Assembly (NCBI GenBank): GCA_977020255.1
Contig: CDROCS010000757.1
Span: 62,001-126,000 of the forward strand
Direction of reading: 5' to 3'
Length of the DNA: 64,000 nucleotides
DNA from: Obrimoposthia wandeli
Lineage: Eukaryota
In this document: positions 19,038-50,906 of the stretch, one piece after another
How positions within the stretch are numbered: the stretch's first letter is position 1
How the letters are laid out: each line of letters starts with the position of its first letter
Notes under the pieces: model-generated
Seen by the model: the letters and a program-made list of their open reading frames with translations, nothing else
Database searches by the model: none
Told to the model about the DNA's origin: nothing
Made by a program: the position numbers and the translations under genes

Positions 19038-19145
19038 ATGAGCGGTCGAGAGAGCAGAGGAGTCGTGGTGAAAGGCAAGTTCAAGGTGCTGAAAAGAACC
19101 AATACAATGCATGCTTCATCCCAGTTCCAGAATGCTCGAGCTCTG
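19038..19145 (+). CDS. Candidate first coding exon (alternative N-terminus 1) of a host gene: MSGRESRGVVVKGKFKVLKRTNTMHASSQFQNARAL
   Basis: GC-rich island with acceptor CCACAG at 19033, ATG 4 nt later, 108 nt open, and a phase-0 donor GTACGT at 19146. Confidence 0.55.
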
Positions 19146-21079
19146 GTACGTCTTTCTAGTGATGTAGTTCATGTGTTCCAATGCATTTACAAACTTCTGG
19201 GTTTGGACAATTATACTGGATAAGGTTACATATAAAGAACTCCCGCTGAAAACTGTAATGATAAATTCCCTAATTTTGCCTTTTTTGAATGTACACTCTA
19301 TGGAAAATTAATTAAAACTTTATACATTGTTTATTTGATTGTATACAGTACATGGCATACATACAAACGTTCCACCGATTTCCAATTTTTTTATAAACTT
19401 GTTCTTCTCTATTTTCGACACAATGTGTATGTCAAGTTAGCAGTACACCTATTGTACATTAGTAAGTTAGAATGAGACATTTACTAAATTAATACCAGCA
19501 GTTGATGTTAAATTCCAATTACAGATTCTATCGATGATAGGATGTCGTATCATTTCTGGCCCATAGAGTAGGTTAGAATTGAATTTTTTAGGTAAAATTA
19601 CATGGAAGAATAAATTTACACAAACCTACACGGATGAGCACAAAGATGATCCAATTAAAATCCATCGAAGAGCACAATTTTTGATAAACTTACTAAGTTA
19701 AAAGGAAGTTAATAAGTTAAATATTTATAACAAGAAAATCAAATTTTGTGTATAGGAATTTTAACTGGATTTCCCGAATGATAATTAGTAAGTTTTTGAT
19801 TTACCTTCTTTGAAAGTTATGATTTTTTCTTAATTTTAATTTAAATAAAAACTAAATAATAAAGATGAAATTTATACTTGTTATGGGTTTTTAGGACTCG
19901 TAAAGCAAAACAGCAACTTCATATTACGTGTTTCTCCATCCTGGATTAATAAGGATAAACAATGGGCATGCTTTATTGAAGAGGTCCATAAAATGATACA
20001 ACTAAATGTTGAAGTCGATGTGAATTATTGGGCAGAATTTACAACATAGTGAAACCATACCTTTATGCCCATTTTATTTTGAGATGTAATTTTTTACAAT
20101 GCTCTATATTGTGGGCAAAAACCGGGAGGGGAGGGGGTCTTTATTACTCATCTCAATTTATCATGAATTTAGATTCATATTTTATAAAAGATATTAAATA
20201 CTCAATAAATAATAAAATTATTTACCATAATTTATCTTTTCAAAATTGGGTTGAAATCCTTAACCTATAAATAGCTTAACAGTCAATTTATCGTTAAAAT
20301 AACGATTTAGCAATATTACATATTCGAAAACTGTTTTGGTGACCAAATCTGAGGGGGGGGGTATTGGCACACATCACGAATAAATAAAATCTCAAAATCA
20401 AGTAAAAACAAAGGGATCCACTGACAACTACAACCTAGAAATTGCGCACCACATTCAAAACACAGTCAGGAGACACACACGAACACATTTTTATAATTAA
20501 TAATAAAAAAATATATAATTTTTTTTCATCAAATTTTACATTCAAGAATGAATTTAGAATTAGTGATATTCTATCTCAGATATTCTATCTCAGATATCGG
20601 TTAAAAAATAAAAAAAGAAAGTAGATGTGATTAAATTATTTTAATTTGAAGAATTTGCGATTTCATGTCTCAATTGACACTGTTAAATGGAAAATTTTAA
20701 TAATTAATATTATGAGAAAAAAATTAAAATTACGAGTTCTAAATTTAGAATTTTTATTCTATTTTTTACATTTATGCTCAGTAGAAATCTTGCAAAAAAT
20801 CTCCCGGAGCAAGGTAAACATGTTTACACAAATATAGAGGGTCATCATAAGTCACATAGCAAATATGATCTTTGTATTGTTTGGTCCCTTTGGTACACTT
20901 TGATACGCGAAAAATTATAATATTGGAATCGGGTAGTTACCTAAATAATAAAAATGTGAACATTTCCTCAAGGAAGATTATTGAAAATTTGGAAGTTACT
21001 ATTTCAAGAGTTATGGATAAATGACTGAATAAAAGGAATTAAAAATATTCCACGAATGTACTGAAAATAGCTCTCAGCA

Positions 21080-21420
21080 CAGCGGTCCCCAAACTGTGGG
21101 AATTCCTCCTGGGGGACTTTCAGTATTCTAGGGATGGGGAAATGAGTTTGAATAAAAATTTGTATTGGTACATTTTGACATAATACATAGTTTATGTAAT
21201 AACTTTAACCTTGCGATTTAATATATATATAGCAATAATGTTAAAAAATGAGTAAACACATAAAATAAGGAGTAAAAGAAAGAAAATATATTAAAACAGC
21301 ATCATTCTTCATAATTAATACATTTTTGTTTATTATATATTTCAAAGATTTACCAGAATACCAAAAACAAAATATATTTAATCATATCACAGAATGGTTG
21401 GCACATAATTTTACAGATGA
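21080..21420. mobile_element. hAT (Charlie/Buster-like) terminal remnant
   Basis: CAGCGGTCCCCAAACTGTGG resembles Charlie-type TIRs; the partner end was not found. Confidence 0.3.
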
Positions 21421-21889
21421 GAAGAGAGTTACATTGATGGACCAGATATAAGGTAATTATAGCATAAAATATTTTATTTATAAGAAAGACAAGTTCAATG
21501 CTTTGAGCCAATGACGTCGATGTAGTGGTACAGAAATAATGGTCCAGGGGCAGTGTTGTAAAATGAAATGATTTTGTATAATGTTATTTCATTAGGGAAA
21601 TAGGAGCGCATATATTCTATGTAAAAGTCAATACCACAAACTGCATAATTTAATGATTATTTTATAACAATAAATTAATTTTTATTGGGAACATTTTGAT
21701 TTTCTCTTTTTCGGTCACAAACGATTAACAAACGATTAACAAACTAAACAAATAAAAATATTATTTAAATTACACGTCCTTGCATTCTATTAGCAAAATT
21801 GCTTTTTGTAAATTTTCATTGACGCGACTTCTTTGGTCAGATAATTTATATTTCAACGTGGAGAAAACTCTTTCTACAGACGTTTGACT

Positions 21890-22620
21890 TGCAGGTGCCG
21901 ATTATACTATATTTGCAAGTTTATTCAAATCACCTCTTCTATATTCCATCTGAATGTCCAAGCTACTTAAATCATTTATCCAAGTCTGGAATTGGGAAGG
22001 AATCGATTTTGTTGTTCTAAGCATGAACGTTATGGCTTTGTGATAAGTTCTCAGTTTGAATCTCTTTCCATATAAATAGTGGTTGAAATGCTGACAGAAA
22101 TAGTAAATTGCTAATAGCTCTTATCTTGTAATGCAGTATCCCTTTTCATGCGCATTCTTTGCCGGTTTCTCCGACTTGGGACAACATCGCTCCGATTGCG
22201 TTGATATTAACATCGGTGTCCAGAATGAATTCCTTTGTAAAATCTGGGAATGCCAAATTTATTCAATATTGCAATTTTTGTTCTCAGTATACAAAACGTT
22301 TGTGTTTCGGCATTATTTCCATATCACATATAAACTTGTAAAAACGTTGAAATAGCAACAAAAATTAAAAACGTGGTTCAGCAGGCCCAAATATTTCCAT
22401 TTTGACAAAAAAGAAAGTAATATTCTCACCTCTACATGAAACGATGTCTGAAGGAGACTTATTAAAGAAGCTATTTTTAAAATTTGGAAATACAAAGGCC
22501 GTTTATCGGAACCTCATCAAAGATGACAATGTCAAATTCGAAAAGAATTCTTTGTTTTCATTCCAAGATCTTGACAATATTTTTCCTGTCACCTTGCTAA
22601 TTTCCCAGGATATCTTCGTG
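21890..22620 (-). mobile_element. Ty3/Gypsy pol remnant (RNase H, traces of RT)
   Basis: Minus strand reads LAFPDFTKEFILDTDVNINAIGAMLSQ...ELLAIYYFCQHFNHYLYGKRFKLRTYHKAI, a Gypsy RNase H segment. KYLG lies upstream. Confidence 0.85.
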
Positions 22621-25029
22621 AGGTCAGTGATGAGCCAAGAGAACGATTGTCTTTCAAAAATCTTGCCTAGTAGTTACATAAAACAAAACATATTTGGTGG
22701 GTTGCAGAGAGGAGAAAGATACAGCGCATTTCCAAATAAAGAAAAACAGCTGAAGACTTTACTATTTAAAAAAACATTATCAATAATGCAATTCAGGAAG
22801 CGCCTTTGATAATTAAATCACAGATTTTTAAGATATTAGAGCTATATTAAATATATTATTATTTTGTATTGTTTATGAATTAACATTATTAAAAAAATTA
22901 TTTGTTTTTCTTCTGTCGATGATTCAATAGCAATTATAACAAATTCATTAACAAAATTGTTAATTTTGATTATTTATCTATGATTTCATAATTTTGATAA
23001 AAAAATGGGACAGAACAAAATGATCAATTTAATATAAAAGAATAGTTATTTACGTTAATTGTTTAGATCAGGAATAAAATGCTTAATTGACAATAACATT
23101 TGCTTTGAGTTTTTCTATCTTTCCATCCTCACTTTACGTTTAAGAATTTCACAATCTCACCTACATTGCAATTAATCAAATACAAGATTACACCTGTAAC
23201 TTTATGACAGGTGCGATAAATTCCTCATATTATCACTAGATATTTCTGAAGATGAAAGAATCAAAACCTAACATCTTAAAATCGTGAAGAAAAACAAAAA
23301 TTGTACATTTATTAACCTTATAAAGTCCATGTACATTTTAACTGATGTACTCTAATACCCCAAAGTTCCATTCATAACACGTGCGTTATACAAACAAAAA
23401 AGTATTTTTTGTTAAGAAAATTAAAAATGACCCTTTTTGAACTTATAAAAGGGACTTCAAACATTATGGATGAATTTATGTGGTAAGCAAATTTAATATC
23501 GAATTTTCGGATTCACTTGTTTTTCTATTTCCTTTTATTATATAATTAAATGAAATAAAATGTTTAGCTAGAATATTAAACTGCAATTTTGACATTGACA
23601 ATATGCATAAATTCGATACATTTCATGAACAACTATTATGAATGACTATTTATTAAAAGCATAAAGCTGACAAAATAAAACAAAACATAAACTCTTTTCA
23701 TTGCTACAACTCATTATTTTCATGTTTATGTAAAGTGCAAGAGAATCTAACAGCTCTAATAATTTTTGTAGTGCATCAGGCAATTCATCTTCTTTGCTGA
23801 ATTCATCGGATAAATCGTCCTTGTTGATGCTTTTATGATAGTAAATCATCTTGTAAATCATCTAAGCATTCAGCCTTTCATTTAGAACAAAAGATTTAAA
23901 ACTTTATTTCACTGAATGTCAAGTGGTTGAATTTTAAAAGTTCGCCGGGTAAAACTGCAAAACGAGAATTATTTTCAATTCGTTTTCTGTTGTTGTTTCA
24001 ACTACCGACATATGTGACGTTGCTGAATCGAGAACTAAGCCAGACCTATGTTTCAAAGACGACCCTGAAAGTTTCCGCCACATCTCGTTATTTTATTATA
24101 CTGGCTACGTTTCTGCATACAACACTGTATAATTACTTGACAAATCAAATGCCATCAGAATTTCATCCATATTGCCAATTTGAATATTACTAACAAATTT
24201 CATAGTGTTTTATGTACACAATAATTGAAACCAATTTTCCTCCAAATCAATGGGTGATTGTTGATCTACAGATTTTTTCATTCAAAAGGAAAACCCAACA
24301 TTCCAGGTAAATTATTATGCTGATTTAGTAGCGTATGAATTACACGCATTATGGCTTCGATCTACGCTGCCTCCGTTAAGTATATGTCTAGTTAAATTAA
24401 AGATTCGGAACTTAATACAGCAGTATAGGAATGAAATAAAACACCGAACAAAGTACTCAAATTATATCGATTCCTTAAAATATGTATACGAGTTTGTATA
24501 AGAGACTATACGAAGTTTATTAATAAAGAGGATGAGTTGTTTTATTAACTTCAAACGGCACTTATAGTGAAATATACTTTTCGAATATCCAACAAAAATA
24601 CAAAAATTGAACACCCTAATATATATATATATATGAAAGGGTAGGGTAATAGCTGGAAAATCTGGTAAAAGCAGTGTTCTTCTGGAAAAAACACATAATT
24701 ATATTAGTCAGCCTAGTAAATATTTTCTTGGTATTTTTTGGTGTTTTTAATTATAGCAGTTTTATTGCAGTTTTTGATATATTGAAAATCATATTTTAAA
24801 ATAACTTAAATAAGCATATAATTTAAAATATTACAAACTATGCACCATGTATTGTCGTGTTTGGTGTTTTGATGGATATATGGCATTAGAAATTTGGAAT
24901 TGTCAGAATTATGATCGTTGGTTGTTTTGTTGATAGCTATTTTTTTTTGTTGGTTCTGATTTTGTTGTTCAATGATTATATTTGAGTATTATTTTTATTG
25001 TGGGTGTTGGGTTCTGAAACTGCCATGTT

Positions 25030-25998
25030 TGACACCAATTGTGTGAGAGGTTGAAATATTTGGAGAATAACGTCTCGTAAACGTTGTGGAATTGACAAGC
25101 ATACCTGTCGAATTGTGTCTTACGAAATAGCATAAAATATTTCACTAAATTTTGTGTTTATTGCTTCTGTAGACTTGCATGAACAGTTTTTGAGATATTT
25201 TTTACCAGAGCCCATATATTTTCAGTGGGGTTAAGTCTGGCCAATTTACAGGCCACGGTTGTAATAGTGGAATATTTGAGTTTAGGAAATATTGACTTGT
25301 TATGTGTGATTTATGAGGAGCAGCAGTGTCTTGCTGCACCATTCTGTCTCCTGGAAATGGAGTAAAGGCGGTTTGCAAGATTTCAATATACTTTAATGAG
25401 TTAACATTTCCATTGATATGCGTTACATGTCTCTCACCGCATCCCGAAATGAAGCCCCATAACTTTTCTTTTATCACAATAAATAAAGTTGAATACATAC
25501 CTTTTCTTAAATTGTGTATTGGGAGGTCTTCTAACAACAATTCTGTACCTATTACTGTTGTTTCGTCAGAAAATAAGACGTTTTTCCAATTTATATTCTT
25601 ATCATAACAAAATGTCTTAACAAATATTACCTTCTTTTTTTAGAAAAAACAGACGATCTTTTAGCCGTCCTTGCTAACAAATAAAGTCTTCTCATATGTC
25701 TTGACACGGTCCATTGAGAAACAACATTATATAAATCACATTCATTGATAACTTGACACGCAGATTTTCCCGGATTACTCATTATTGGCGTTTAATTCTT
25801 AACTTTTGAAGCTGGGTAAGTTTTTGTTTAGGCCCACTTCCCATTTTCTTTTTGAATAACCCATCTTTCTCGTACTTTTAAATAATCCTGTATACTGTAG
25901 ACTTCGCAATTATAAATATATCCGCAATATATAAATATGATTGACCACTTTTGTATATATTACATTATATTTTTTTTCATTAATGTGAGTTGAGGCAT
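25030..25998 (-). mobile_element. Tc1-family transposase pseudogene
   Basis: Contains the HTH-like IAKSTVYRII, then WKNVLFSDET, LWGFISGCG..NGNVNSLKYIEIL, QQDTAAPHKS and WPVNWPDLTP, ending SIPQRLRDVI. TIRs were not identified. Confidence 0.85.
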
Positions 25999-27023
25999 GA
26001 TTAAAAATTCAACTTAATTATACAAATTACTTTAATACGATCAATAGTTTTATAATTATGAATATACTATGTAGATTTTATAACGTAAGCATGATTTATA
26101 ACATCTTTACATTTTTTTACGCTCACTCAAATTTTAGTAATTAAAATTAATTATCTATTTATTTAAAACCAATCAAATAAAGTAAAATATAATAAATATA
26201 TATATATATATCATTTTAACACCTCATTATCTCCCAATTTGCCACAGTTTTATCTAAATAGATTATTAGTACTTATGAACAAAATATTGAATGAAAATTC
26301 ACAAATTATCGATAAATTAACTATACATTTGAACTATGTCGGTGGCCACTAAATGTTACCGTAAAATAAATAAATTCTAAGTTCAATTAATTTGAAAAGA
26401 AATGACAATGATAAATATCTAGTAATTCAAAGATCTAAATCGTGACAGTAATTTCCTAGTGTCTAAATCTAGGCTTTACAATAGTTTGCAATTACCAACA
26501 AGAAAGTTTATTAATATTGAAGATTTCAGAAGACACATCAGGAAGTTCATGTTTGGAATATGCTACAGTTAACTACTTAAAGTGGCTGATTTGTAGAGTG
26601 CCTTTGAAAAATAAGTCTTACAACTTTTAAGAAATTGGTACTATATTAAAAATATGTAATGTTATTAACCATTTTGGGATTAAAAGTTTATTATATTTAT
26701 AAAACCTGTGAAAATGGAACTTTATCATTTGTTTAAATGGTAATCAGTTTTGAAATATTGCAATAAAAAAAAGAATATTTAATTTAAAATTACAAAATAA
26801 TCACAATTTTTACATATATTTATTAATTATAAAATCTACTGAAAAATAAAATAATGTTAATATGCATAATAGAAAACAAATAGTGATATACAATGATTAT
26901 TTATATAATAATTATTAAATTTCAGAAATATCAAACAAAATGTATCAGAAAAAACATATTTAAAATTATTTTCATATGATTATTAACATAAATGACTTAA
27001 ATACTTTACCTTACTTAAAGGAC

Positions 27024-28753
27024 AGTAGGTACTTTGATGGAGTCTAGATCACTGGGGGGTCACCCTCTTGTGTGCGTACACCATGTTAAAGGGTGTCACT
27101 CCATAAGGGTGTCACACCATAGGGGTGTCACACCATAGGGATGTCACACCATACGGGTATATGTTGCCTTACCATAGGGGTGTCACGTTTCATAAGGGTT
27201 ATGTTGACTCACCATAGGGGTATCTTGCTACACCATAAGGGTCTGGCTCAGAAAGGTTATGAAGGTTTGAAGGTATGGTCGTGACCGTCTATGGTCGGCC
27301 AACATACCCAAGGTGTTGTGGTCGTTCATAGGTGAAAGGGTCGGACTCAGTTTTGACTTGAATGTTTGAAGGTATAATTAAGGTCTACTATGATTGTCCA
27401 TCACATCTAAAGGGCCATGGTCGGTCATAGATGAAGGGGTCAGGCTAAAGACAAAATCAAGTTTAAAATATCATGGTTGGAATTATCTTTAGAAGACGAA
27501 TTATTCCATAAAGATATAGTTGTTCATAGATGAAGGGTTTAAAAAAATTGGAATTTCATAGTTTCAAGTACATGGTTGTATTTGGCAACATATTACGAGT
27601 TTATTCATGTAAACATTTTATGGTCATCCACAAGTTAAGGGTCAGATTTGGAACAAACATGATAATTGTATTACATAGTTGTATTTGTCTATGAAAATTG
27701 AGTTCAAAGATACCCTTAAGGTCATGCATACTTTTAATTAAGAGGTCCTGGTGAAAAATACTTGTAATTTCAAAAAATAATATATTTTTAAATTTAAATT
27801 TGTGCCAAATTTTTTATGGTTTCTATTGATTTAATTAAACAAATTTTAATTTAACGGGTTTTTTTAAATAAAATATTAAAGGAACATTATTTAAAATAAA
27901 TATTAAGGAAAATGTTAATAAACTCAAATTACTTTACTAACAGTATTTTTTTCTTCTCATAAATATTTAAATTTATGCAAATTTTTATCCATTTTATTAA
28001 TGTAATTAAACAATTTTGTTTAATAAAATTAAGATTTCCTGGTGGAAAAAAAACTTGTAATTTTGTTTTATTCAAAATTAAATTTGTGCCAATTTAATTT
28101 GTTAGATATTATTAAAGTTAAACAAATTTTAATTTATCAGGTTTTTAAATAAAATATTAAAGTACCAAACACATCTATAGTAATCAGTCAATTATTCTAT
28201 GTGAAAGTTAAAGTTCACTCTTATCAGTTAAGAAATGTATTACGTAATAATAATAATACACACTATTATATGTGAAAATTTAGATCAAAGTTTTTTCCCA
28301 GGCTTACGCATCTAAAGAATTATGGTAACATTTCTTTAATTAACTGTAATTATATGTCATGCATACTTTAAGGGGTCCTGGAAAAAAATACAAATACTTG
28401 TAATTTTCAAACAAATAAATATATATTTTTAAATTTAATTTGTGCCAAATTTTTCATTGTTTCTTTGATTTAATTAAACAAATTTGATTTTAAACATAAG
28501 TATCAAACAAATGTTAATTATAAAATAAAAGAAATAATTAATAATTTGATAAATATCATCTTACCACAAGTTATTCATCGAATCCATTGATCATATACCC
28601 TTATGGTGTGACACCCCTATGGTGAGGCAACATATACCCTTACGGTGTGACATCCCTATGGTGTGACACCCTTGTGATGTGACACCCTTTAACATGGTGT
28701 GCTCACACAAGGGGAACCCCCCAAGTAGTCTAGACTCCATCAAAGTACCTACT
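27024..28753. mobile_element. Non-autonomous Polinton/Maverick-type element, family B, 1,730 bp
   Basis: Both ends read AGTAGGTACTTTGATGGAGTCTAGA (25 bp identical, inverted). The 6-bp TSD AAGGAC is at 27018-27023 and 28754-28759. TIRs of about 160-210 bp contain CATAAGGGTGTCACAC arrays. The interior has about 100-bp (27320-27540) and about 320-bp (27720-28490) direct repeats and no ORF of note. Confidence 0.9.
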
Positions 28754-29499
28754 AAGGACAAACGTGACTTTACACAAAAAAGGTTTTGTTTTCCTTTTGC
28801 AATCGTTCTTCTAGATAAAACTTCTTTAAATTGGGCCTTAAGCGGCTTGAACCCATTTTTGAGACCTTTCTTTTTATTAAAATAATCAAATTCAGAATAT
28901 TCCGACAGATAATTCAATTGTTTAGTTTTGATGTTCTCGGGCTAGCGGAAATAGGAGGAAAATTATGAAAACTATAAATTACAATGAATATTACGGCATA
29001 ATGTGTCGATTATCTTTGAAGTAGAGCAACGTTCGAGATTCGTCTGATTGATTACCTGCAGTAATTCATGCACACCGAGTTGTATTTCCGAAACGAAAAT
29101 TTGCCCCTTAATTGCAAACTAAGAACAGTAGAATGTATGGAAAATTATGAAATGGAAATTCCTTGCCTTTTATAACTAACAAGGTTCAATCGATTTTTCT
29201 TTAAAACAGGAAAATTCACTTTTCTATACGAGGTGTTTTTTCTTTTAACGATTGAGCGCATAGAGAGAGTTTTGAAACAAATGTTGAACTACGAAACGTT
29301 ATCACTGGCTTACATTTTCTGCAACTGTCTTGACAGGCTGTAAGGTAGTTTACACACAACCGAAATGATAAGTTACTGATATAATAATACAAAATCATGA
29401 CAAAAAGTTATGAAACGGAGAGCTAAGGAAATGATATAGGAACCGTAAAAGAGAAGAAAAACAATAAAACCAATGAGTTATAACTTAGAGTAAATCAAG

Positions 29500-29547
29500 A
29501 TGTCCGTGCTCACAAGTTGTACATTAGAAATCTGTGATAGCCAAATG
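29500..29547 (+). CDS. Weak candidate alternative first coding exon: MSVLTSCTLEICDSQM
   Basis: Acceptor-like TAACTTAG at 29488, ATG at 29500, and a phase-0 donor GTGAGG at 29548. It is short and could be chance. Confidence 0.25.
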
Positions 29548-29665
29548 GTGAGGTCTACTCCAATACATATACCCTCAAGTATCAGCTGAATATGACTTAC
29601 TGAATAATTTTATATTAAAACAAATAACATACTTGACCAAATAGTACGCCTAGATGGGTTAAAAC

Positions 29666-29791
29666 TTAAATAGTATGTCACGTTTTCATATCCAGGTTGC
29701 AGAAAATGTCATATGTACAGAAAAAATAAATTTACATATTTATCAATTAAATAGTATGTCACGTTTTCATATCCAGGTTGCAGAAAATGTC
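29666..29791. repeat. 45-bp exact direct repeat (29666-29710 and 29747-29791)
   Basis: TTAAATAGTATGTCACGTTTTCATATCCAGGTTGCAGAAAATGTC occurs twice, 36 bp apart. Confidence 0.9.
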
Positions 29792-30574: not shown

Positions 30575-30890
30575 ATCCAACAACTGTGTGATCTTTGACA
30601 TAGCTCTTCTTCTCCGAGTCTTTTTTTATTCGTGGTATTGTGACTTCTAAAGCACATCTGAGATCATCTTCCACCAGAAATATATTTCTATATGTAGTTT
30701 TCTTAACTAAAACAGTTGCAAATCTTTACAAAGATACGCGAAAGAAAAAGGTAGAAACATGTGCAATTCAATATGAAGACATTTCCATTGAACAACAGAA
30801 CTTATTCAGTGTATTTGATTCGAATGTATCTTTAGCCGGATAATCGTTGTTCAGTTTTAAAAAAAATCAGCTTCAACTTATTCATCGATT
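30575..30890 (-). mobile_element. hAT Charlie/Buster transposase C-terminal remnant
   Basis: LNNDYP...FATVLVKKTTYRNIFLVEDDLRCALEVTIPRIKK..LCQRSH matches the Buster-type ending KTKYRxRLxVEDDLRxALS..PxI..L....SH. Confidence 0.65.
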
Positions 30891-35677: not shown

Positions 35678-35779
35678 ATGTTTGAAGGTATCAATTTTCG
35701 TAGTTCTCCTCGTATAATCCGTTTTGTTTGCTCAATTGAAAGAGTTAAAAGGTGTCGGGCAATTCGACAATTGCGTCAG
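35678..35779 (+). CDS. Candidate alternative first coding exon: MFEGINFRSSPRIIRFVCSIERVKRCRAIRQLRQ
   Basis: Acceptor CTTTATAG at 35658 and ATG at 35678 preceded by an in-frame stop. It is open for 102 nt and ends at a phase-0 donor CAG|GTACTC. Confidence 0.4.
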
Positions 35780-36651
35780 GTACTCGTTTACCCTCACATG
35801 TACAGTCGACTTCTACATTCGTGAACATTACGTGCACCTTTCAATCGATATCAATCAACCTCATCAGAAGTTTGAAAGCTCTAGTTAACATTTTTGGCAT
35901 TTGTATGAAATCATACGACTTCAATTTGATAATAAGATGAGTACGTTACATCCCCAGTACTTCTAACCATTCGCTTTATCAGATATAACTACGCTACAAA
36001 CGAGGGAAACTTCGGATCGTTCGGTTTGTCTTTAACCTCTTAAGTATGTTTGTCATCAATTTACATATCAGAACAGTTTTGGTCCTCCACCCCAATTTTC
36101 GCTGGTGTCAACCTCCCCACGTTTATCTGGTCTCCTTTCGATGAACATCTTCAACATTGATCTCAACCCAGTGGTCCAGAACATCAGCTTGGTCGTGAAA
36201 TATTGTCATACACAAACGATTTCACCATAATATCGATTTCTTCTGCACAACAATAGATCATGGTGAGTCGCACGGTTGACGCTGCGCGCTGGAGCAATCT
36301 TTGCAATACTGACAGGTTTTACTGTTATCTGGGAGTGCATTTCAAACCCATTAACCAAATATACAAACAGTGGCATTAGTAAAATTTTACCCTTCACTAT
36401 TGTTTTATCAAATCGATAAATTAATAACACAGTGCAACTTGAAAATAAGGAATAGTTTTGCATCCTAAATTCGACACAAATCATTCGAATGCACTATCGC
36501 GTCCAGAAATGCGACTTTCTTTGGTAATTTATACACATTTCTCAAACACTTATATACACTGCACAAACTCAAAGATATACCATTTGAAGCGTCATAAACA
36601 GATGAATCCGACAGATGAATACACTTCTTATTCTCGTCAAAGATTCAAGTT

Positions 36652-37226
36652 AGTAGGTACTTTGATGGAGTCTAGACCTCTTGGAGGGTCCCCCTTGTGT
36701 GCGCACACCATGTTAAAGGGTGTCACACCATAAGGGTATCACACCATAGGGATGTCACACCATAAGGGTATATATTACCTCACCATAGGGTGTCACACCA
36801 TAAGGGTATATGTTACCTCACCATAGGGTGTCACACCATAAGGGTGTCTCACCATAAGGGTGTCACGCCATAGGGATGTCACACCATAAGGGTATATGTT
36901 ACCTCACCATAGGGTGTCACACCATAAGGGTGTCTCACCATAAGGGTATATGTTACCTCACCATAAGAGTGTCACACCATAAGAGTGTCACACCAGAAGG
37001 TGTCACGCCATAGGGATGTCACACCATAAGGGTATATGTTACCTCACCATAAGGGTATATGTTACCTCAACATAAGGGTGTCACACCATAGGGATGTCAC
37101 ACCATAAGGGTATATGTTACCTCACCATAAGAGTGTCACACCATAAGAGTGTCACACCAGAAGGGTGTCACACCATAATGGTGTCACACCATAGGGATGT
37201 CACACCATAAGGGTATATGTTGACTC
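36652..37226 (+). mobile_element. Solo family-B Polinton-type left terminus with expanded subterminal minisatellite
   Basis: Begins AGTAGGTACTTTGATGGAGTCTAGAC, preceded by CAAGTT. About 510 bp of 15-23-bp units follow (CATAAGGGTGTCACAC, CATAGGGATGTCACAC, CATAAGGGTATATGTTACCTCAC), then an abrupt truncation. Confidence 0.88.
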
Positions 37227-38627
37227 AAAAATTAGATGAGATTTTTGGGTACCTTAAAAATAACAAATGCCGCTTTGAAGATGAGCCGTTGATATTATTT
37301 TCTCCTCCGCATCTACGGTGTGGCATCTACAGGGAAACCCAAGATCAACTGTTGTAATCAGTTCCATTGGCTAATACGACTTCGATTTTTATTGCTTTTA
37401 GTGAAGTGGAACAATTTGAATTTGAATGATGTCTCAAATTAGTTTAAGGAAAAAGATCAAAAATTAAATATCGGTAAAAACAGTTTGTCCTCATTTTATG
37501 TTAACCCTGACAGAAGAACTTCTCGTGGATGAATGTAGTGGTGACTGGACTGCTTATAGGGCCTCCTTCATATGAAAAGTAAATTGTATGGTTTTCCTTT
37601 CATTAGTGTCAATGTCTGCTTCATAATCCCCGCCTATTTTCTCTGCATCTGCAACCACATATAACTCTCACAAATAAACTAACCAAACACTGTTTCAATT
37701 GTCAAGATCCTAATGATGTTTCTCACTCAGGATGACAGAATCAAACAGAAGGGAATATTATGCTTTTCTCAATTTTAATTTTCCTTTTATCTCGTTTTCT
37801 CTGTACTGTTTCTGTTGAAGATAGAACATTTTGCTTTTCATTTGCCTTGTCGACAAATATGGCAATAGAAAAGTGGGATGCTTCGTTTATTCAGTTTTCC
37901 TATTTGTGATTCACATTATTTGAATAATCATGACTCATCAATTTGTTGTACTTTTAATTTGATTTGATAGCTAAATTACAATTTAATTTTTTTTATCATT
38001 TTGTGAGTTTGTGCTGAATTTAGATTGGTATTTTATCAATGAGAACAATTCAATATTTCTAGTTTTTATTGACGCTATTTGTAAACTGTCCGTTTAATAT
38101 TAGATGTTTAGTCTATTTTGAAGCAAGCTAACCAAACTAAATTGAGGCTTGGATTTTTTTATATATTGAAACATGAACGTGTTATGATTGTATTCAAGGG
38201 CTATGTTAAAAATGAGTTTTGTGAATCTATAAGAAAGATTTAGAAAAAATATATAAATATTGAAAAAAAAAATACGAGTAAAAATAAAAATAATAATGAA
38301 TTTCATAAATTTATGGACATACACATTTATAAAACGGGAAGAACATTTTGTGTGTACTTTTAATGTGTCAGAGAATCAAAATTAATGCCATAATAAAAGC
38401 TGATTATCAGCATAGAAACTAATAAAAATGCACTTTTTACAATCTATCGGACGTTTTGGACGCATCTTTGGGTACTACAAAGAAAATGAAGTAATTTTAT
38501 TCATTTTCATTTAGCAGAAGAGAAATGAAATTAGTCTTAAACTACGATGGACATTTCACTTCGTGAACGAAATCAGAAATTGTAACATTTAGGGTATTTT
38601 TGCCCAATTCAATGTTTTATATATATA

Positions 38628-40378: not shown

Positions 40379-40489
40379 ATTGATCAATCCGGAAGCAACC
40401 ATAGTATCGCCAGTGACCCAGAGGACTGTTGTGAGGGCAACGAGGCGAGCACCAGGCGAGGCAGAAGATCCGCCATCATAGACAATACG
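40379..40489 (+). CDS. Internal phase-0 exon encoding a PKI-like PKA pseudosubstrate: IDQSGSNHSIASDPEDCCEGNEASTRRGRRSAIIDNT
   Basis: Strong acceptor TTTTCTCTCCTCGCAG, donor GTGAGT, 111 nt, only one frame open, GC-rich island. Confidence 0.72.
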
Positions 40490-42215
40490 GTGAGTTCCTG
40501 ATACTTCATTCTAGCAACTATATAAGCTGAGACTGAAATGTACGACTCGTCGATCAAACCCCATTCACTACATGGTGTAATTTGTGTCTGCTTTACTTTT
40601 GACATAATATCCGTAAGATGAGAGTGTTTGATTGATTTGAATGTACTAGAATGTTGCGTGAGTACGCTTCAAGTCTTCTGATTTCAGTCATCAGTCATAA
40701 TCTTCTGACAAGCACAATAAACAACACCACAGTTGAACATGGGGCGCAATTGAATATACCCAGCCTTAATATAGTCACTAATTATCATATAAATGTACAT
40801 TATTTTGATTTTTCAACTTATTCACCTTTTGCTTACTGCTTACGTTCTTTCAAAATGCTAATCAGTTCAGAAATATTCCACACGATTTGTTTAAATCAGT
40901 GATGTAAAACGTTGTTTGTAACGTAACGCAAAAACGAAATAGCAAAATAATTTATCGTTAATTGGCAAAATTATGTTACATAACGGTATAAAATTTTAAT
41001 TATGTTAAAATAACGAAAATTTAGTAACGCAAACGCAAAAAAAATCAGTATACATTTTTGTTATTGCTAAATAATAATTCCTTTCAATTTTACTGAGTAA
41101 AATTAGCACCCAGTCAGAATAGTATTGTTTTTTAATTTGTGATTTAAATATTATTTTATTATTCTGTATTAATATTCGATTTTTCTTTAAATTTAAAAAA
41201 AAATTATAACTTTAATATAATAACTTTGTTTTTATAACTTTTTAACGCAATGAATTTTCTTTTTCGTTTTATTACGAAATAACGTAATTAAAAAAATTCA
41301 TGATATCTGTATATAACAAAATGTGTAATGCTATAATTTTTTTTTCGTTTTCCATCTTGAAATTAAAAATGATGATAAATTCACCGCTTTACTATTACTG
41401 TTTTTCGTTTTTAGCTTAGAAATAGGGGTACTTATAGTACTTTTACACATTTTTAAAATGACATTTAATATTTAATTTTTTGTTAGTTAAAATTATATTT
41501 TTCAAATTTTAATTTTATTTTTGAACATTATAGTTTATTTCACCTTATTTTATATAATTCATTGTGTATTTTTTTGAAACTTTTATTATTATATATATTT
41601 TGTGTATAAACTTTATTTTTAAAATTTGTATAATAATTATAAGACAAATAATTGAATATATCAAACACAGAACTAAAACTGTTTTTAAATGTTTAAAGAA
41701 GTTTTTTTATATCTGTCGAAATATGAACCCTGTTTAAAAATAATTTTGAAGAAACACCAAGAAAAAATTAATCAAAGCACATTTCCATAAAATTTAGTCT
41801 ATCTGAAATTAGAATTGAAATATGATATTTTGATAATGTGTGGGTCAAGATCCAGATAACATTAAAAAGCAGTTTTAAACAATTTTTGACCAAATATTCA
41901 GAACACCTGTTTTGTTTGACAATTTGATAATGAATATTATTAACATCTTTGTAATATAAAATGCGAAAATAAAGAATAAATAAAAAAATGCAGAGAATTA
42001 CAGTAATTATTCACCTATAAGGGGTCCTACCTATAAGCAGGGCCGGATTAACCCCTTTAGGTGCCCTAAGCACTTACAAGATTTTAGTGCCCCCTATATA
42101 TATAAGTAATTCAAAATATAAATAAAAGTAAACTATAAAATTTTATTTTTCGAAATGAAACAAAACTTACAGTAAGATAAAATATAATTTTTATGTAAAT
42201 ATATATACTTTTACT

Positions 42216-44894
42216 TCATTTATATTTGAAAATTTTTCTCCTACATTTTATAATTGCAAAGTCTTTGATAAGATCCTCAAAACTAATCTTGTGTAACATA
42301 TCTGCTTCTATACTTAGTAGAGATAAGTCATCCAGCCTGCCTTGTTGCATAGTTGTTCTTTTGGCATTTTTAATATTCTTCAACTGGGAAAATGAACGCT
42401 CAGCTGAGCAATTTGTAACCATTAATGTTAAAAATATTCGAAAGGCAATTTCTACATTTGGGAATGCACACTCAATATTGTCTTCTACAATTATTTTATA
42501 AAGTTCAGCATGACTGAATCTTGTTTTTACATTATCTTGTGCACTGAATTTATGGCACACATATGAGTGAAACTGCTGAAGCTCAACAGATAAATTAATG
42601 TTCAAGTCCTCTGGGTAAGCATCAATCATATTTTTGCAACCCTGAGAATACCTTTCAATTTCAGTAGATGATGAAGTAACATTATGTGGCACATCACTTA
42701 GACAAGAAAATTTCTCTGCTATTTCTTTGTATATTTCTCCTCTTTTTCTCATCTCAGTTTTAAGTCTGTCAATAATTGTGTAAAAAGGTGGTGATTAAAA
42801 AGTTATCTCTGTTATTCAAATACACTTCTGGTGCATCTCCGTCATTTGGTACCTTCTTTCTGATTCGTTTGCGAGTTTGAGCTGTCTTGTAATCAACATC
42901 TGGTAGCATTTCCTTTGTAGCTGCTTCATATCTTTGAAATTCATCTCGTGAAGTGCACAGTTGGTCAGCTAAAGATTCATACAGATCTGCACTTGTTTTT
43001 AAATTTACATCCTCATTCTGTAGAATTTTGCTCACTCTATGAAAATTTTGCAAAATCTCACCCCAAAAATTCAACATAAAAACGAATTCTAGCTCTTGCA
43101 TCTTGCTTGCAATATTATTTGCTTCTCTTCTAGTGTCTCCCTTTTGATTCTGGTCTTCAGTTATACATTCTAACGCTTCTAAAATTTGAAAAAAGGATTT
43201 CAAAATTGCTGCTATTGCCATTGCATGTGCCTCCCATCTGGTGTTAGATAGGATTTTTAAAACACTTTCATTTCCAATACAACATTTAAGAATTTTCCAC
43301 CTGCTAGTTGAGGCTGAAAAAAAGGTATAGAGCAACTGTACTGTAGAAAAGAAATTAACCGCCTCTTGACAGCAATCAACAGCACTTCGACCTACCAGAT
43401 TTAGTGAATGAGCTGCACAGGGCACATATATAGCAAACTTGTTTGTTTCTAAGATTATTTGCTGCATCCTTATAACGCCCGGACATGTTGGCAGCATTGT
43501 CGTAAGATTGACCCCTACATTTTGAAAAGTTTAGCTTACAAACTTCTCGTAAGTACTGCAACACCTGAATTGCCATTTCCTCGCCAGTATGACTTTGCAT
43601 TTCCAAAAGGTTAAGAACCGTTCAATAGGTTGTCCATCTTTTAAGTACCTAAGTACAACACTTAACTGATCGATATGTGATAGATCTGGTGTTGAATCAA
43701 CAGATAAACTAAAATAACCAGACAATTTTACTTCGTCAATAATGAGTGTGTGGACCTTTTGAGCCATTAGATGAATGAGTTCCTCACAGGTGGTTTTCGA
43801 TAGGTAAGAAGGATTTCCTTTGCCAGAATTTCCATATTTCGAAATGTGACCTGCTAAAAATGGATCAAACTGGCTTATGAGCTCAAGCATCCCTAAAAAT
43901 TCCCATTCTGCAATGATCCAAATCTTTCTTCTGTTCCTCGAAAAGCCAAGCCACGTTCTGCTAACGTACAAATAACAGCTATGACACGCCTCAAGACATG
44001 TTCCCAGTAATTACATTCTTCCTGAATTTGTTTTTCCAACTGTTGTCCCAACCCCGCACCTTGTCTGCGAGTTAAGTATGTTAGCATAAAGTCTCGGTGA
44101 CTAATGCTTTTTTCATGATGATCAATTACAATAGTATTTCGCCAGTCACTAAACCCTTCTCTGGTAACAAATTGTGAGACATTTTTAGGAGCAAAAAGTT
44201 TACAAATATAACAGTAAACTGATCCTGTTGATGGTGAATACAATAACCACTCTCTCCTGTATTTTTCACCATTGGCTTTTGTTCCAATGAAAAGATTTTG
44301 AGAACAGTATCTTGATGGTTTGCCACTACTAAAGTGCCGGTAAGACTTGTCAAAAGGCCCATTGTGGTGTTGACAGTCACTGGGTCCACAAGCAATCCAA
44401 TAAGCCACATCATTATCAGAGAAATCTAGCCACAACCCTGGATCTTTTGCTATATTTACTTTATCTTTTGCAGACTGATTCATTTCACCACCATCACCAT
44501 GGTCCGCTATACTTTCATTTTCAGCAATTATTTCAACATCAGAAAGGCTTGTAAAGCAACTTGAATCAACATTTGTAGTAGATGTATCAAGATTATTTAC
44601 AGGCAAAGTGAGATCATTGAGACATGTGGTAGATGAACCTGCTTGTGACACCTCAGTGATTCCAACATCATTAGGTTTTAATTTTGAAGTGATCAAAGTG
44701 GTATTTGTGTCCAATTCTGATGACGGAGATTGGTTTTGATTCAGAATCGGTATATCATGTTGACGTTGTGGTCGAGGAACTTGCGTGAAGAAATCAGTAA
44801 GCTTTACAGTCTTGGGCATTAAATCCAAAGTCTTTTCTTGTTTCTCTTTTGATAGTTTTCGCTTTTGCGCACCACTTAATTGAATACGTTTCAT
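42216..44894 (-). pseudogene. hAT transposase, four frameshifts, no in-frame stops in the coding path
   Basis: Motifs in order: REWLLYSPSTGSVYCYICKLF (TTF zinc finger), GLAFRG, LSVDSTPDLSHIDQLSVVLRY, GQSYDNAANMSG, CAAHSLNL, TRWEAH, CSAERSFSQLK (dimerisation domain). They are spread over five overlapping ORFs. Confidence 0.93.
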
Positions 44895-45275
44895 CTTAAT
44901 CTTGGGTCTGTAAAATAAAGATAATTTTATTAGATATTATTGTATATAATGTGGCAATCAACACAGTTACAATATCATATTCTTGGCATACACAACCAAA
45001 ATGGGAATTTAAATATAAATGGCAATTAAATTTAACTCAACGGAAATATCAACTCAAAATGTTGAATACAAATTAAATCGAAAGAAGGAACCGAAAGAAG
45101 GAACCAAACCTATATATAAAATAAAAATACTTAACATTAGAATTAATGAACCGCAATCTATAAACATATCAATATTAACAGGACACATTTTATATTTACA
45201 TTTATTTATTTAAAATAGAATATTTAATTATAGAAAACATGAATAAATAAATTATAAAATATATTCATATTTATG

Positions 45276-45408
45276 CAGGGCCGAATTAAGAGGGAGCTGA
45301 CTCGGCTATAGCCCCCAAAATTAGTTACACTATTATCATTATGATGTAAGGGCCCCTGTTTGAATTACAGCCAGGGCCCCCACCCCATGCAACCTTAATC
45401 CGACCCTG
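45276..45408. mobile_element. 133-bp hAT-type MITE nested inside the hAT element
   Basis: Inverted ends CAGGGCCGAATTAAG / CTTAATCCGACCCTG (13/15), similar to the host element TIR. No exact 8-bp TSD is visible. Confidence 0.55.
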
Positions 45409-45899
45409 CATGTATATACTATTAAAGTACACTTAATAGACTTACCCTAAAGCAAAGGGAGAAAAACATCAAGGTGCCCCTATAATCCGAATTTGTTTCT
45501 CGTTATATATGAATCATATGAACTATTGGTATATTATAAAATATATTTTGTAATTTTTTCAATAACATTTTTAAAAATTATGAATTTGCACATTATTTGG
45601 CTCTATAAAAAAAATTATTGTATAATAAATCCAATGTAAATCCAACAATAATTTTTTTTGTGGTGCCCCCTTTCCCTTGATGCCCTAAGCACGTGCTTAT
45701 ATTGCTTAATGGTTAATCCAGCCCAGCCTATAAGGGTGTCCGGTCACCGAAAATTTCACGCTTCACCTATAAGGGTGCCCATAAGTGCCTATAAATAATG
45801 CATCTATAAGTGATTCGGTGTCGGTCTCTCTCAAAAACATGTTTTAATGAATACCCTTACAGGTGAATAATTACTGTAGGATTTCTTTCATGATCACAA

Positions 45900-46400
45900 A
45901 AGTTTTGAATTGAATTCTGGACTGACCTTCGAAGTTGTGCTCGGTATTGGGTATGGCTGGCAAAAACTTGGCACTTTATCAATGTTTGTTCAAAGTCCAA
46001 GTGTTAAAGAATTGTTCATTTAATAATTATTTTCCTGTAGTTTGTCTCGTACATTTAATTCCATTGATGATTTGGTTCCAGATGCAGACCTACAAAATAT
46101 AAAAAATTATTTATTTCATATCTAAATAATATGTTTTAGATTCATTTAGTTTTGCACTTTTAAAATATGCTCAGCATTAATGAGAACCGTCGACTGAGGA
46201 GGAAGAGTGGCAATTCCTTGAACTTTTAGTGGATGACCTTCTGCTTCATTAGCCAGTAAACATGTAGTCGATGAAGGTAAGAACATTTTCTTGGTTAGTG
46301 AAGAGTCAATAATGTCTTTAGATTTTGCATTTCTAAGTAGTGCAATTATAAGCCCACTTTCATTTTGTTGATCAGCTTTGCAGTTGTGAAATATCCTTCA
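45900..46400 (-). mobile_element. Probable Gypsy protease/RT-start remnant
   Basis: ALLRNAKSKDIIDSSLTKKMFLP..AEGHPLKVQGIATLP resembles a decayed retropepsin; FCQPYPIP resembles an RT N-terminus. Confidence 0.4.
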
Positions 46401-46796
46401 GAAGAGCCGTTTAAAGATGCATCTTTAAGTTTTTTAAAGCTTGTAATTAAAAATTTAAGAGTCAACACTAGCATTTTTGACACATTTTCAATAATAGCTC
46501 TATATTATCCAATGTTCTCCGCACATTTCTCCCGTAGAATACGACATTTGTACATTTACAGGTTATTTCCATGCATTCTCTGTCGTCTTTTTAGTGGATA
46601 AATGGTAATATTTAAGGACAAAAACCAGTCATTTCACTCTGAATTTCTTTACATCCTGAACTATGTTTAAGACTTTCAAGTTTATTTGACAGAAGCTTCA
46701 ATCTATATATTCCTTAGCCATTTAATGATCGTGTTGGCTGAAGTACATATTTGACAAATTATAAATACATTAGGCCAATACAAAATCCACTCCATT

Positions 46797-46855
46797 CGTT
46801 GCTTTTTCAATTTTTTTCTCCGGGGGGTGGATTAGACCGGACACATCCACCTACT
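46797..46855 (+). mobile_element. Solo, internally deleted family-A terminus (right end)
   Basis: GTTGCTTTTTCAA (shared with 31826) ... GGGGGGTGGATTAGACCGGACACATCCACCTACT; followed by ACAGTG. Confidence 0.8.
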
Positions 46856-48659
46856 ACAGTGCAAAGTTGGGAGACATTACGAGCCAATCGCAGCAATTGA
46901 TTTTCACCCGAATCCACCCGTGAAATTGAATATGCGTGCAGCCGTTCAAAGGAAGGAAGTAACGAACAAATTCTTTTGCAGGAAATGATTTTTTAACGTA
47001 CTTTTAAATGGGAATATCTCAAAAATATGTAACATGAGTCATTATTTTTGACGATAAGTATACAATTTTAACATACAAATTTCAATTTCTGTATTTTGTT
47101 GTGGAAAGTGAAAATTGGTTAAACTCAATTTGGAGATGAATATCTTCCCAAATAAGATTATTCGGTTAAAATTCGGTATATAAATATGTATGTTGATGTA
47201 CATAAAAGTTTCCTTGTACATTTTTAACTCATTCTGATAATTACATTTTTTGTAAATCCAAAATTTATTGAATCCAATCTTAATCATGGCTGGTATACAC
47301 AATTTCTATATCAATTTGTTCCATTTTGAGGAACATTATGGTTATTTCTGGGAAAATAATGAACAATTACTTTGTTTAAACTGGGATAAGCGCCAAATTT
47401 ACTGATAAATTGTATTTCTGAATAACCCGAGTATATAAGGTTATTCTACACCAAGTACTTATTTAATAATTGGGAGAAGTTCTCATTGCTAAATCAAACA
47501 AATATAATTGAAGCAATAAAGTACTTTTAATTAAATTCAAAATCCAACATCCTTTTAAGAGTATATTTAAATAATTACCCAGTTCATTGCAGTTACAAAT
47601 ATTTTCTGATGCATATTTTTCTAACTTAGATTTCAAAACATTGTTAAAACATTCAATTTTTGATGCGTATACTACACATTCTACGGCAATTGCTTAGCTT
47701 TCTTAAGACTAAACAAACAATTGTTTGGAGCCACAAACGATTCTAATTTACACTTATCAGCTACTCAAATTGACATTATTATTTCAATATTTCATCGGTA
47801 ATTGTACTTCTTCATACACATTTAATACAAAACTACTCGAAAGATAAATATATTGTTCGTTATAAAATTCAATTCATTTCTAACATAAACAAACAATTTT
47901 CAATATTTTTCATTATAAGTCGATGTTCATTAAAAACAGTTTTCATTATACAAAGGTTAACTTTAGATTTACGTCTATGCGAGTAAATTACAATAAAAGC
48001 AATTAATATTGAAAACGATGTTAACTAATATAAATTCAATTTGAGTTGATAAATAACAAACTCAGTCATCGACTTTAGATTTCTCTAGATTATGTGAATT
48101 AAGTAATCCTCTCGTCCTACGTGGTTTCTATATTTAGACTGAGGAATATTGGAAATATGGGTGGAGTCGTAGATGGTTTTTCTTGTGTCTTTGTCTATTA
48201 TTGAAGTTATTTTATTTTTTAATCATATATTTCCCATAGTTTCTCAAACTATTTCTTGATTATCGGGAAATATATTTTTAATTTAAATGTTATGTAAAAA
48301 TATTTTCGCAATTCCAGATTTTGATTTTGATTCGTTAGGAAAATTCCTATTTCTCAAAAGATGGGTTCTTACTTTGATTTATAAATCAACAAAATAATAA
48401 CGACCTAACAATTTAAAAGCGTAGTTTTAACTCCAGTAGTTGATCAAATTATATATTTTTAAAATAGTATAAAAAAAGTTTATGTATCGAAGAATCAATT
48501 TTTAAATGAAGTCAATTTTGACGATAAGGAAAATATGAAATTTTCAAATTTGAGTTTTTTTTTTCTTTGTCAAAATTTGATTTTGCATGAAATAATGAAG
48601 TGTTAGATTAAGGAAATTTGAATAAGATAAATAAAACAATTTTTTATATTAAAAAAAAT

Positions 48660-49870
48660 TAAACTTTAAAATCAAAGGTCGAAATGAATTTAAATAGAAA
48701 ATTAAAAATACACTGATTTTAGAATAAAATATCGAATTAAAATAAATTATGACCTTGAAAAAGTCGTGGGAAATGTGTGTAGAATGAGTAGAACAGTGTG
48801 AGAAGGGGCCGATGAAGATAAATCTAGTGGGGAAGGATGGGTGGATTTTGAAAAGGAAGTTGAGATTTAGTTAAGTTAGAAGAGCGGGAACCTATTAGTA
48901 GCGCAACTCAGAATCCATTAGCTTGCAAAGAAGAACTCAGATTCCATTAGTTCATGAAGAAGCACTCAGACAGGAATACTTCGAGACGCAGCCGCACTCT
49001 CCCATCTTCAGAGGCCACCAGAAGCTAGAAGTTAGAGGTGAGTAAATTTTAAATATAAAGATAAATTAATTGCAGAAAAATGCGGAACTACATATATTCA
49101 AGTTAGTAAATTCGGAACTACTGATATTTAAATTGAACTGGTGAGCAAAAAACTCAACTTACATAAAGTACATTTTTGAATGAAGACGAATTTAATTTTA
49201 ATTACAGTTCAAGGAAAAGACATTGAATTTTAAGTACATTTCGAGTAAATCGACGATATTTAATTAGTCGGCAATAGCATATTAAATTAAAGATTTAGAT
49301 AGACGGGTAGAAAGGCACGGGAAATAATTTGAGGATGATAATAGCAGGAGGCGTATAAAGGTATACGCATAGAAAAGTGTTAACCCTATTGGGTATTCTG
49401 TAATAATGTTAGGAAGTTTTAAGTGGGCTAAATTAAATATAGTCATCTTAGCAAAATCGATAAAAGATTCATTCCGATTTAAATTCTTTGGGAAATTCGT
49501 GTGCTCCCTAACATATAGATTAGCCGAGGGACAACCAACGAGACAATATTCCACGTTCTGACAGATTCAGAGGAGTATTGTCTACGTCGATTGGTCACGG
49601 CTCTGTTTCATCGATATTCGGTCTTGGTGTTGCCAGACTCTTCCGACATAAAAGCTAACTCAGATGATAAACTATTCACCCTGCGTTACATCACACCACA
49701 CTAGCTTTGGGGCCCTACTAGCTATTCTGTGAACACAATTCCTTGAACACACCACAAGACAATAAGACACAAAACCTTCAGATTGAGACTATAATTAAGT
49801 AGAACATGAACAGGTAGGCCACATCCATCTGTAAGTCCTATCGTTACAGAACTCACGATGGGGGCCTCCA
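48660..49870 (+). repeat. Second, diverged copy of the unclassified LTR-like repeat (see 7900-9004 and 12912-13400)
   Basis: Shared motifs as listed for the first copy. AAAGGTCGAAATGAATTTAAATAG also occurs inverted at about 34062-34090. Confidence 0.4.
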
Positions 49871-50307
49871 TACGAGGATATAATTGAAGAGATTCAAATA
49901 GAAATCCCAACACTTATATGAAGTTACCAAATGAGTCTCACCAAATTTAAAGTACTATTTTATTCTCGGAAGTAAAGGGTACATAAATACATAATTTATC
50001 AGCTGTTTGATCTGATATTAGGCTTGTTTAAGTTTTTCTTTGTTTACAATCGACTTAATTCTTCTGTTAACATTTAAAAAGTTAATAAATAAATTAGTAA
50101 ATAATTTAATCTCATTAATTTCTGTCTATTTTTTTTTAAAATGTACATGATTAATCTTCAAATAATCTTCAAACGCTTTGAAACCTTCTTCTCGGACAAC
50201 TCGTACTTAATTAGTGATACAGGATGATTAATTAACTATAATATTTATATTTTTAGAAAAACAGTTAATTGTGAACGTGATATTTTAGTAACTGCTAATC
50301 TGCGCAG

Positions 50308-50616
50308 AATGTTATCGGTACGGATGATTCTCAAGTGGCCTCATCAGGGACGGGGACAGGCAGACCAAACTGTCACGGCCCACTCCCAACTTGCTCCCCG
50401 TCATCCTCCGTCATCCTCCCGTTACTGAACTGCGTGTCCGCTTCATCTTCTTCCGCATTCACCGCACCCCCCTCAAATCCGGCTTCTTCTCCCTCCCCCT
50501 CCTTCAGATCACTCTGCCCTTCCATGTGGGTACCGTCACCAACAATTGAGGCTACCCGAAACGAGATAAACATTCTTAAAAAGTTACCGTTTATTAAACT
50601 ACAATCCAACACATAA
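50308..50616 (+). CDS. Candidate terminal exon (Ser/Pro-rich, 102 aa) of the same host gene
   Basis: Branch-like GCTAAT plus CTGCGCAG acceptor, open in phase 0 (NVIGTDDSQVASSGTG...ILKKLPFIKLQSNT*), with AATAAA at 50621-50626. An alternative donor GTGGGT exists at 50526. Confidence 0.55.
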   Translation, partial: NVIGTDDSQVASSGTGTGRPNCHGPLPTCSPSSSVILPLLNCVSASSSSAFTAPPSNPASSPSPSFRSLCPSMWVPSPTIEATRNEINILKKLPFIKLQSNT

Positions 50617-50906
50617 ATCAAATAAAAATATTGAAATTGTTTGTCGCTTCAAGTAATGAGTTGTTAAGTTTTAAGAAAGCCAAGCAATTGCTGTTAAAGG
50701 TGTAATGAACGCAACAAAAATTGAGTGTTTCAAGATGCTTTTAAATCTAAGTTAGACCAAAAAATATTCACGAAACTGTTTTTTCTAAATCTGCTAAAGT
50801 AATCTAGAAAGAAACTGAAAATGATTTACCAATATGGAAAACTTGAACGCTTTTTTTGTTAAAAATCGTGAGACATTGGAAATAATATATATTTAATTTA
50901 TAACTA

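Follow-up and report, generated by a model that had tools for sequence, protein, structure and literature searches.

An unannotated host gene for a mostly disordered protein with a putative PKI-type pseudosubstrate motif and a conserved helix

Gene content of the locus

We analysed a stretch of 64,000 nucleotides from Obrimoposthia wandeli (GenBank assembly GCA_977020255.1, contig CDROCS010000757.1, positions 62,001 to 126,000 of the forward strand; hereafter the window, with coordinates counted from its first base). A preliminary description of this DNA had proposed a hidden host gene for a low-complexity protein resembling PKI, the family of small inhibitors of PKA. The gene itself is borne out: the window holds an unannotated + strand host gene for a mostly disordered, Ser/Pro-rich, low-complexity protein. 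Three segments of the + strand, 40379-40489, 50308-50525 and 53442-53659, are probably consecutive exons of this gene, judging from splice signals, reading frames and phases; the first encodes a motif that resembles the PKI inhibitor site, and the last encodes a conserved helix. All three are unique sequence free of repeats. The window as a whole has a GC content of 29% with sharp GC-rich islands, its introns are long and have canonical AG/GT borders, and the source genome is eukaryotic, of invertebrate type and AT-rich. Searches and structure predictions were run per single exon or stop-free frame, and Pfam gave no domain in any exon or open frame of the gene that was tested (E<=10).

A conserved exon at 53442-53659

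The exon at 53442-53659 (+; internal, coding, 218 nt, phase 2 to 1), which the preliminary description had overlooked, has a strong acceptor (gttttctcttccag/G, at 53441/53442), a GCG/gtgaga donor (53660) and an open frame between them. With a strict exon filter (YAG after >=80% pyrimidines, a GTRAG donor, an open frame, 50-400 nt) and GC above 0.5, the only segments that pass in the window, on either strand, are this exon and 40379-40489. Since it ends in phase 1 and no convincing phase-1 exon follows it within 53660-64000, the 3' part of the gene would lie beyond base 64000.

An exhaustive HMMER search of 1.84 billion representative proteins, which covered this exon only, returned one true relative, an 85-residue open reading frame (ORF; P0001) on L001, an ENA metagenome contig of 709 bp and 24% GC (ERZ27256860, k141_1108856). 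Given that GC content, the metagenome sample contains a relative of the source organism that is more AT-rich still. The other match of this search, a repeat protein of Entomoplasma (a mollicute), is regarded as spurious. No annotated or known-family protein with the block described below was found among the 1.84 billion representatives, and the exon alignment gave no relatives in the JGI metagenome, GTDB genome and IMG/VR collections.

Within the exon, a variable, low-complexity first half is followed by a conserved second half. The conserved block, IPSVNIIKEQQ(I/K)KILKKQNTIADLTAKTS..., spans 53542-53659 (+; 118 nt) in the alignment to L001, with 87% amino-acid and 69% nucleotide identity over 39 codons in the exon frame, as compared to 28-58% identity in the other five frames; codon position 3 holds 24 of the 37 mismatches. 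The similarity stops exactly at the donor (G/GT in both sequences), and the acceptor phase (AG/G) is common to both, whereas no alignment extends into the flanks or over the first half of the exon. Because amino-acid identity exceeds nucleotide identity, mismatches gather at position 3 and the similarity ends exactly at the donor, we conclude that 53442-53659 is a coding exon under purifying selection, seen in a comparison of species whose silent sites are saturated. AlphaFold2, with an alignment depth of two sequences, predicts the block as a single amphipathic helix (exon residues 35-62; block-mean predicted local distance difference test (pLDDT) score of 81-89 over residues 41-60) and the rest of the exon as disordered. 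The helix, IPSVNIIKEQQxKILKKQNTIADL, has hydrophobic pairs II, IL and IA, then L, in heptad-like spacing. We note that by eye it does not fit the RII-binding pattern of AKAP type (its hydrophobic pairs are 7-8 residues apart, not 4), nor the usual spacings of a nuclear export signal (NES).

The motif exon and its match to the PKI inhibitor site

The exon at 40379-40489 (+; internal, coding, 111 nt, 37 residues), described earlier as a strong exon of phase 0 to 0, deserves that name. Its acceptor (ttttctctcctcgcag/A, with a long pyrimidine tract ahead of CAG) and its donor (ACG/gtgagt) are both strong, one frame only is open, and its GC content is 0.54 (0.59 at third codon positions, GC3). There is no ATG inside it, and so at least one further exon should lie upstream of the motif.

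At 40445-40483 (+) this exon encodes ASTRRGRRSAIID, a motif resembling the PKA pseudosubstrates of PKI and of the type I regulatory subunit (RI). Nine of its 13 residues are identical to the PKI-alpha site ASGRTGRRNAIHD, as read from the published sequences of PKI(6-22), TYADFIASGRTGRRNAI, which includes ASGRTGRRNAI, and of PKI-tide, which continues ...AIHD (PMC7878667). Arg stands at P-6, P-5, P-3 and P-2, Ala at P0 and Ile at P+1, and the pseudosubstrate core R-x-G-R-R-x-A-[ILV] with a non-phosphorylatable P0 is present as TRRGRRSAI at 40451-40477. The residues common to the motif and PKI-alpha are ones that we take to be invariants of the PKI family: R15, G17, R18, R19, A21, I22 and D24 in PKI-alpha numbering, that is, by position and presumably throughout PKI alpha, beta and gamma, R at P-6, G at P-4, RR at P-3/P-2, A at P0, a hydrophobic residue at P+1 and D at P+3. 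The 9/13 match, first reported in the preliminary description, is real: in a six-frame translation of the window (128,000 positions), ASTRRGRRSAIID is the sole 13-mer with >=6 identities to the PKI site, and the best matches in 100 shuffles of local composition have 5-7 identities.

The linking exon and the gene model

The segment at 50308-50525 (+; internal, 218 nt, phase 0 to 2), a candidate coding exon for a Ser/Pro-rich, low-complexity stretch, is the top GC island of the window (0.61) and has one open frame on the + strand. The phases of the three segments agree: 111 nt (0 to 0), 218 nt (0 to 2) and 218 nt (2 to 1), with AT+G (Met) as the junction codon between the second and the third. 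Direct joining of 40379-40489 to the exon at 53442 is excluded by a phase mismatch, and 50308-50525 has exactly the bridging length. The agreement of phases is observed, and from it we infer that the three are spliced together; they alone account for about 182 codons.

Weighing the function of the motif

Our preferred reading, to which we give a probability of about 0.4, is that the gene encodes a predicted regulator or scaffold that is longer than a small PKI and has a PKI-type motif embedded in it, together with a helix. The most likely course of events under this reading would be as follows. The host gene, with 10-kb introns filled with transposons and a start perhaps at 19038-19145, would yield a Ser/Pro-rich, mainly disordered product of more than 180 residues with two modules. 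In the first, RRGRRSAII, with its Ala at P0, would dock as a pseudosubstrate where a basophilic AGC kinase of PKA type takes up its substrates, in the cleft, much as the inhibitor sites of PKI and RI do; in the second, the conserved amphipathic helix would bind a partner or self-associate. That RRGRRSAII is a working PKA pseudosubstrate is a plausible but tentative proposal, at odds of about one in three, and any binding is expected to be weaker than that of PKI, as the Phe-containing helix of PKI is missing.

Several results weigh against this reading. The PKI model of Pfam is silent for the motif exon and for its 54-aa stop-free frame (hmmscan against Pfam-A at E<=1, then E<=10, where very weak matches may be hidden by the HMMER filters). 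A phmmer search of the motif exon against PDB chains, which include many PKI peptides, returned at E<=10 two unrelated spider toxins and zero PKI chains; since the toxins outscore the PKI chains, database-wide similarity of the exon to PKI is not significant. The JGI metagenome, GTDB genome and IMG/VR collections yielded no orthologue of the motif exon, and neither did a word search with the 54-aa frame among proteins of 30-94 aa (the word search reaches proteins of 0.55-1.75 times the query length, so that its blanks are uninformative on long proteins). P-11 is Asn, where PKI has Phe, as the preliminary description had already pointed out, and the hydrophobic helix behind the nanomolar affinity of PKI is absent; the segment ahead of the motif, SDPEDCCEGNE, is acidic and polar instead. 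The linking exon has moderate splice sites (acceptor ctgcgcag/, donor CAT/gtgggt), and the minus strand is open there too (50376-50648, a 91-codon acidic frame with splice-like borders), which makes this exon the weakest link of the model; its assignment to the + strand comes from phase bridging rather than from direct evidence. Finally, all exon junctions are read here from sequence.

These results lead to a competing explanation that may well be right, if at somewhat less than even odds: the resemblance to PKI is coincidental, and the exons encode part of a larger protein, namely a disordered N-terminal region or linker, and the exons for its domains lie past the window. RRGRRS would then be a nuclear-localisation patch, a phosphorylation or docking site of a basophilic kinase (with the Ser before Ala), or a stretch of no specific role. 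The continuation of the gene in phase 1 with no convincing next exon in 53660-64000 agrees with this, as do the blank Pfam and PDB results for the motif exon and the restriction of the observed conservation to the helix of exon 53442-53659. The minimal motif, RRxA followed by a hydrophobic residue, occurs five times in the six frames of the window, which is not above chance. The uniqueness of the extended match in the window and its excess over all shuffles speak against coincidence, although the motif was picked out by recall, which is nearer to a database-wide search than to a window-only test and limits the significance of the match. The matches also sit on residues of PKI that we take to contact PKA-C, and a larger protein of a known family with the 53442-53659 block did not appear among the 1.84 billion representatives.

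If the preferred reading holds, the locus would encode an invertebrate PKA inhibitor with a non-PKI architecture (long, with a conserved helix and no export signal), and such regulators would escape annotation as only 10-40 residues are conserved. It is conceivable, if rather unlikely, that we see a new class of regulator of the PKA catalytic subunit in an AT-rich invertebrate lineage, namely a long disordered protein that combines a PKI-type pseudosubstrate with a separately conserved amphipathic helix for targeting or tethering and has no detectable annotated relative. If the motif is inactive, the corrected model of a real, unannotated and selectively constrained gene still stands.

The read-through tail and candidate first exons

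The preliminary description had modelled the gene differently, as a small divergent PKI of about 155-175 aa with promoter-specific N-termini, a stop at 50614 and an export signal like that of PKI. Its five proposed segments, including the ATG-bearing 19038-19145, 29500-29547 and 35678-35779, all translate as it gave them. The frame of 50308-50616 is indeed open to a TAA (50614-50616), with AATAAA 5 nt on (50621-50626), and the tail does fit the class-1a NES spacing. We nevertheless regard this model as improbable. GC content falls at the donor at 50526, from 0.57 (50308-50523) to 0.38 (50527-50613), and the donor is phase-compatible with the conserved downstream exon, so that the tail at 50526-50616 (+) is probably intron and would at most mark an isoform with intron retention or alternative poly(A); a short isoform produced by intron retention or intronic poly(A) may exist. 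The NES-like pattern of the tail is at chance level: the six frames of the window contain 1,580 instances of class-1a spacing (about 1.2 per 100 aa), as expected of AT-rich DNA, whose translation yields I, L, K, F and N. AATAAA, too, is found on the + strand once per 383 nt. The proposed export signal moreover contains a Pro, and about 95 residues separate it from the pseudosubstrate, as compared to about 15 in PKI, and a word search with 50308-50613 found nothing similar among proteins of 57-180 aa. Rather than stopping at 155-175 aa, the gene would thus continue via the 50526 donor to exon 53442-53659 and leave the window. The preliminary description had itself named, as a result that would speak against it, use of this donor to reach a large protein of a known family; the phase-compatible donor fits that outcome, while a known family was not found. 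These chance levels carry a general lesson, that the chance frequency of short-motif and NES-like matches in AT-rich sequence should be estimated before anything is read into them.

The alternative N-termini fare no better. Open segments from an ATG to a phase-0 GTR (>=16 codons) number 49 on the + strand between 19000 and 40378, against 57 on the opposite strand; as such segments are no commoner on the + strand, the three ATG exons carry no weight as a class, and three N-termini or promoter-specific isoforms are not called for. Taken singly, 19038-19145 (+; 36 residues from the ATG, phase-0 donor CTG/gtacgt) is the best of the three proposed first exons: it is the sole one to sit in a unique GC-rich island (18951-19200), and no other ATG intervenes between an in-frame stop 36 nt upstream and its own. 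Two TCAGTY motifs, which resemble the arthropod initiator, lie inside the GC island at 18854-18878, 165-185 nt upstream of this ATG. Island, stop and motifs lend weak support to 19038-19145 as a candidate first coding exon.

There is little probability, lastly, that 53442-53659 alone is real and that 40379-40489 and 50308-50525 are fortuitous GC-rich frames, or part of a minus-strand or non-coding transcript, with the motif untranslated: open frames of 37 and 72 codons at 54-57% GC are not rare by chance, the minus strand also has an open frame, with splice-like boundaries, in the region of 50308-50525 and the conservation evidence is limited to the third exon, but the splice sites of 40379-40489 are textbook, it alone passes the strict filter alongside the conservation-verified exon, and the two segments stand out as unique GC islands from a background of 29% GC, with lengths and phases that bridge exactly to the conserved frame.

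Repeats and neighbouring features

The intron between the exons at 40379 and 50308 contains a degraded hAT transposase (ZMYM1-like; 42216-44936, minus strand; Pfam Dimer_Tnp_hAT, E=2.5e-8) that is split over four ORFs. It has 115 relatives, and because close ones are found in a Logan contig (97% identity) and among named proteins in Homarus americanus (lobster, 87%) and Hydra vulgaris (60%), a wide and possibly horizontal spread of the element among animals is suggested. A fragment from the RNase H part of a retroelement reverse transcriptase lies at 21905-22120 (minus strand; Pfam RT_RNaseH, E=2.4e-9). Other repeats include one GC-rich interspersed family, whose members at 27024-27219, 28592-28755 and 36650-37228 (up to 18 self-matches) could be mistaken for exons, and a duplicated block with inverted copies at 9005-9926 and 11923-12905. 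The latter has a His/Ser/Ile-rich open frame (9672-10160 on the + strand, 11899-12177 on the minus strand) and is probably a repeat, not a gene.

Two GC-rich ORFs at 3857-5342 (minus strand), one of 196 aa from an ATG at 5342 and one of 131 aa, include an RRGRR stretch; neither has a Pfam match, and a GC-rich stretch (5345-5700) lies next to them. They may belong to a neighbouring, divergently placed gene. The window contains a run of 133 Ns at 2825-2957, and no Rfam families or tRNAs were found in any part of it.

Comparison with PKI and other kinase inhibitors

The candidate protein shares with the PKI family (PF02827) the core A-S-x-R-x-G-R-R-x-A-I-x-D, with Arg at P-6, P-3 and P-2, Gly at P-4, Ala at P0 and Ile at P+1, and both proteins are disordered. 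As a peptide, the nine-residue core of PKI is by itself an inhibitor at tens of nanomolar, and the helix with Phe ahead of it contributes roughly another tenfold. The differences are larger: the PF02827 profile gives no match here; the next 70 residues after the motif are Ser/Pro-rich, with no leucine-rich CRM1 export signal about 15 residues after it; the motif stands away from the N-terminus, whereas the inhibitor site of PKI lies within about 25 residues of it; the product has more than 180 residues and is unfinished, as compared to fewer than 100 in PKI; and PKI has no counterpart of the conserved helix. As one defining feature of PKI is present (the core) and four are missing (a match to the profile, a helix that bears Phe at P-11, an NES close to the site, and a short chain with the site near its N-terminus), we do not file the locus as a PKI; at most, it may act like one through its embedded motif. 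The "divergent PKI-like regulator" of the preliminary description thus survives in its pseudosubstrate core and not in its family membership. PKI homologues have been reported in many invertebrates, e.g. K09E9.4 of C. elegans, but not in Drosophila (PMC4674680), so a PKI-type regulator in an invertebrate would be unsurprising in itself, and the architecture would be the unusual part.

The pseudosubstrate mechanism is described for both PKI and RI (PMC7723848). The type I regulatory subunit of PKA (RRxGAI) is alike in RR-x-A-I, in Ala at P0 and in the placement of the site in a flexible linker; the sequence after the motif differs, and the docking/dimerisation and cyclic-nucleotide-binding domains of PKA-RI were not detected by Pfam in the exons and open frames tested within the window. 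Flanking sequence and module order rule out the pseudosubstrate contexts of PKA-RI, PKG and aPKC. CaM-KIIN, small protein inhibitors of CaMKII (PMC4674680), are likewise disordered, and in them, too, hydrophobic and acidic residues come after a basic, pseudosubstrate-like stretch; they act on another kinase through another consensus, and no similarity to them was detected.

Among longer proteins, vertebrate ARHGAP36 and the C-tail of Smoothened carry a PKI-type pseudosubstrate that captures the PKA catalytic subunit. The locus has no sequence relationship to either and no GAP or seven-transmembrane (7TM) exons, and the likeness is one of concept only. If the motif works as proposed, the product would join the few larger proteins that harbour a PKI-type pseudosubstrate.

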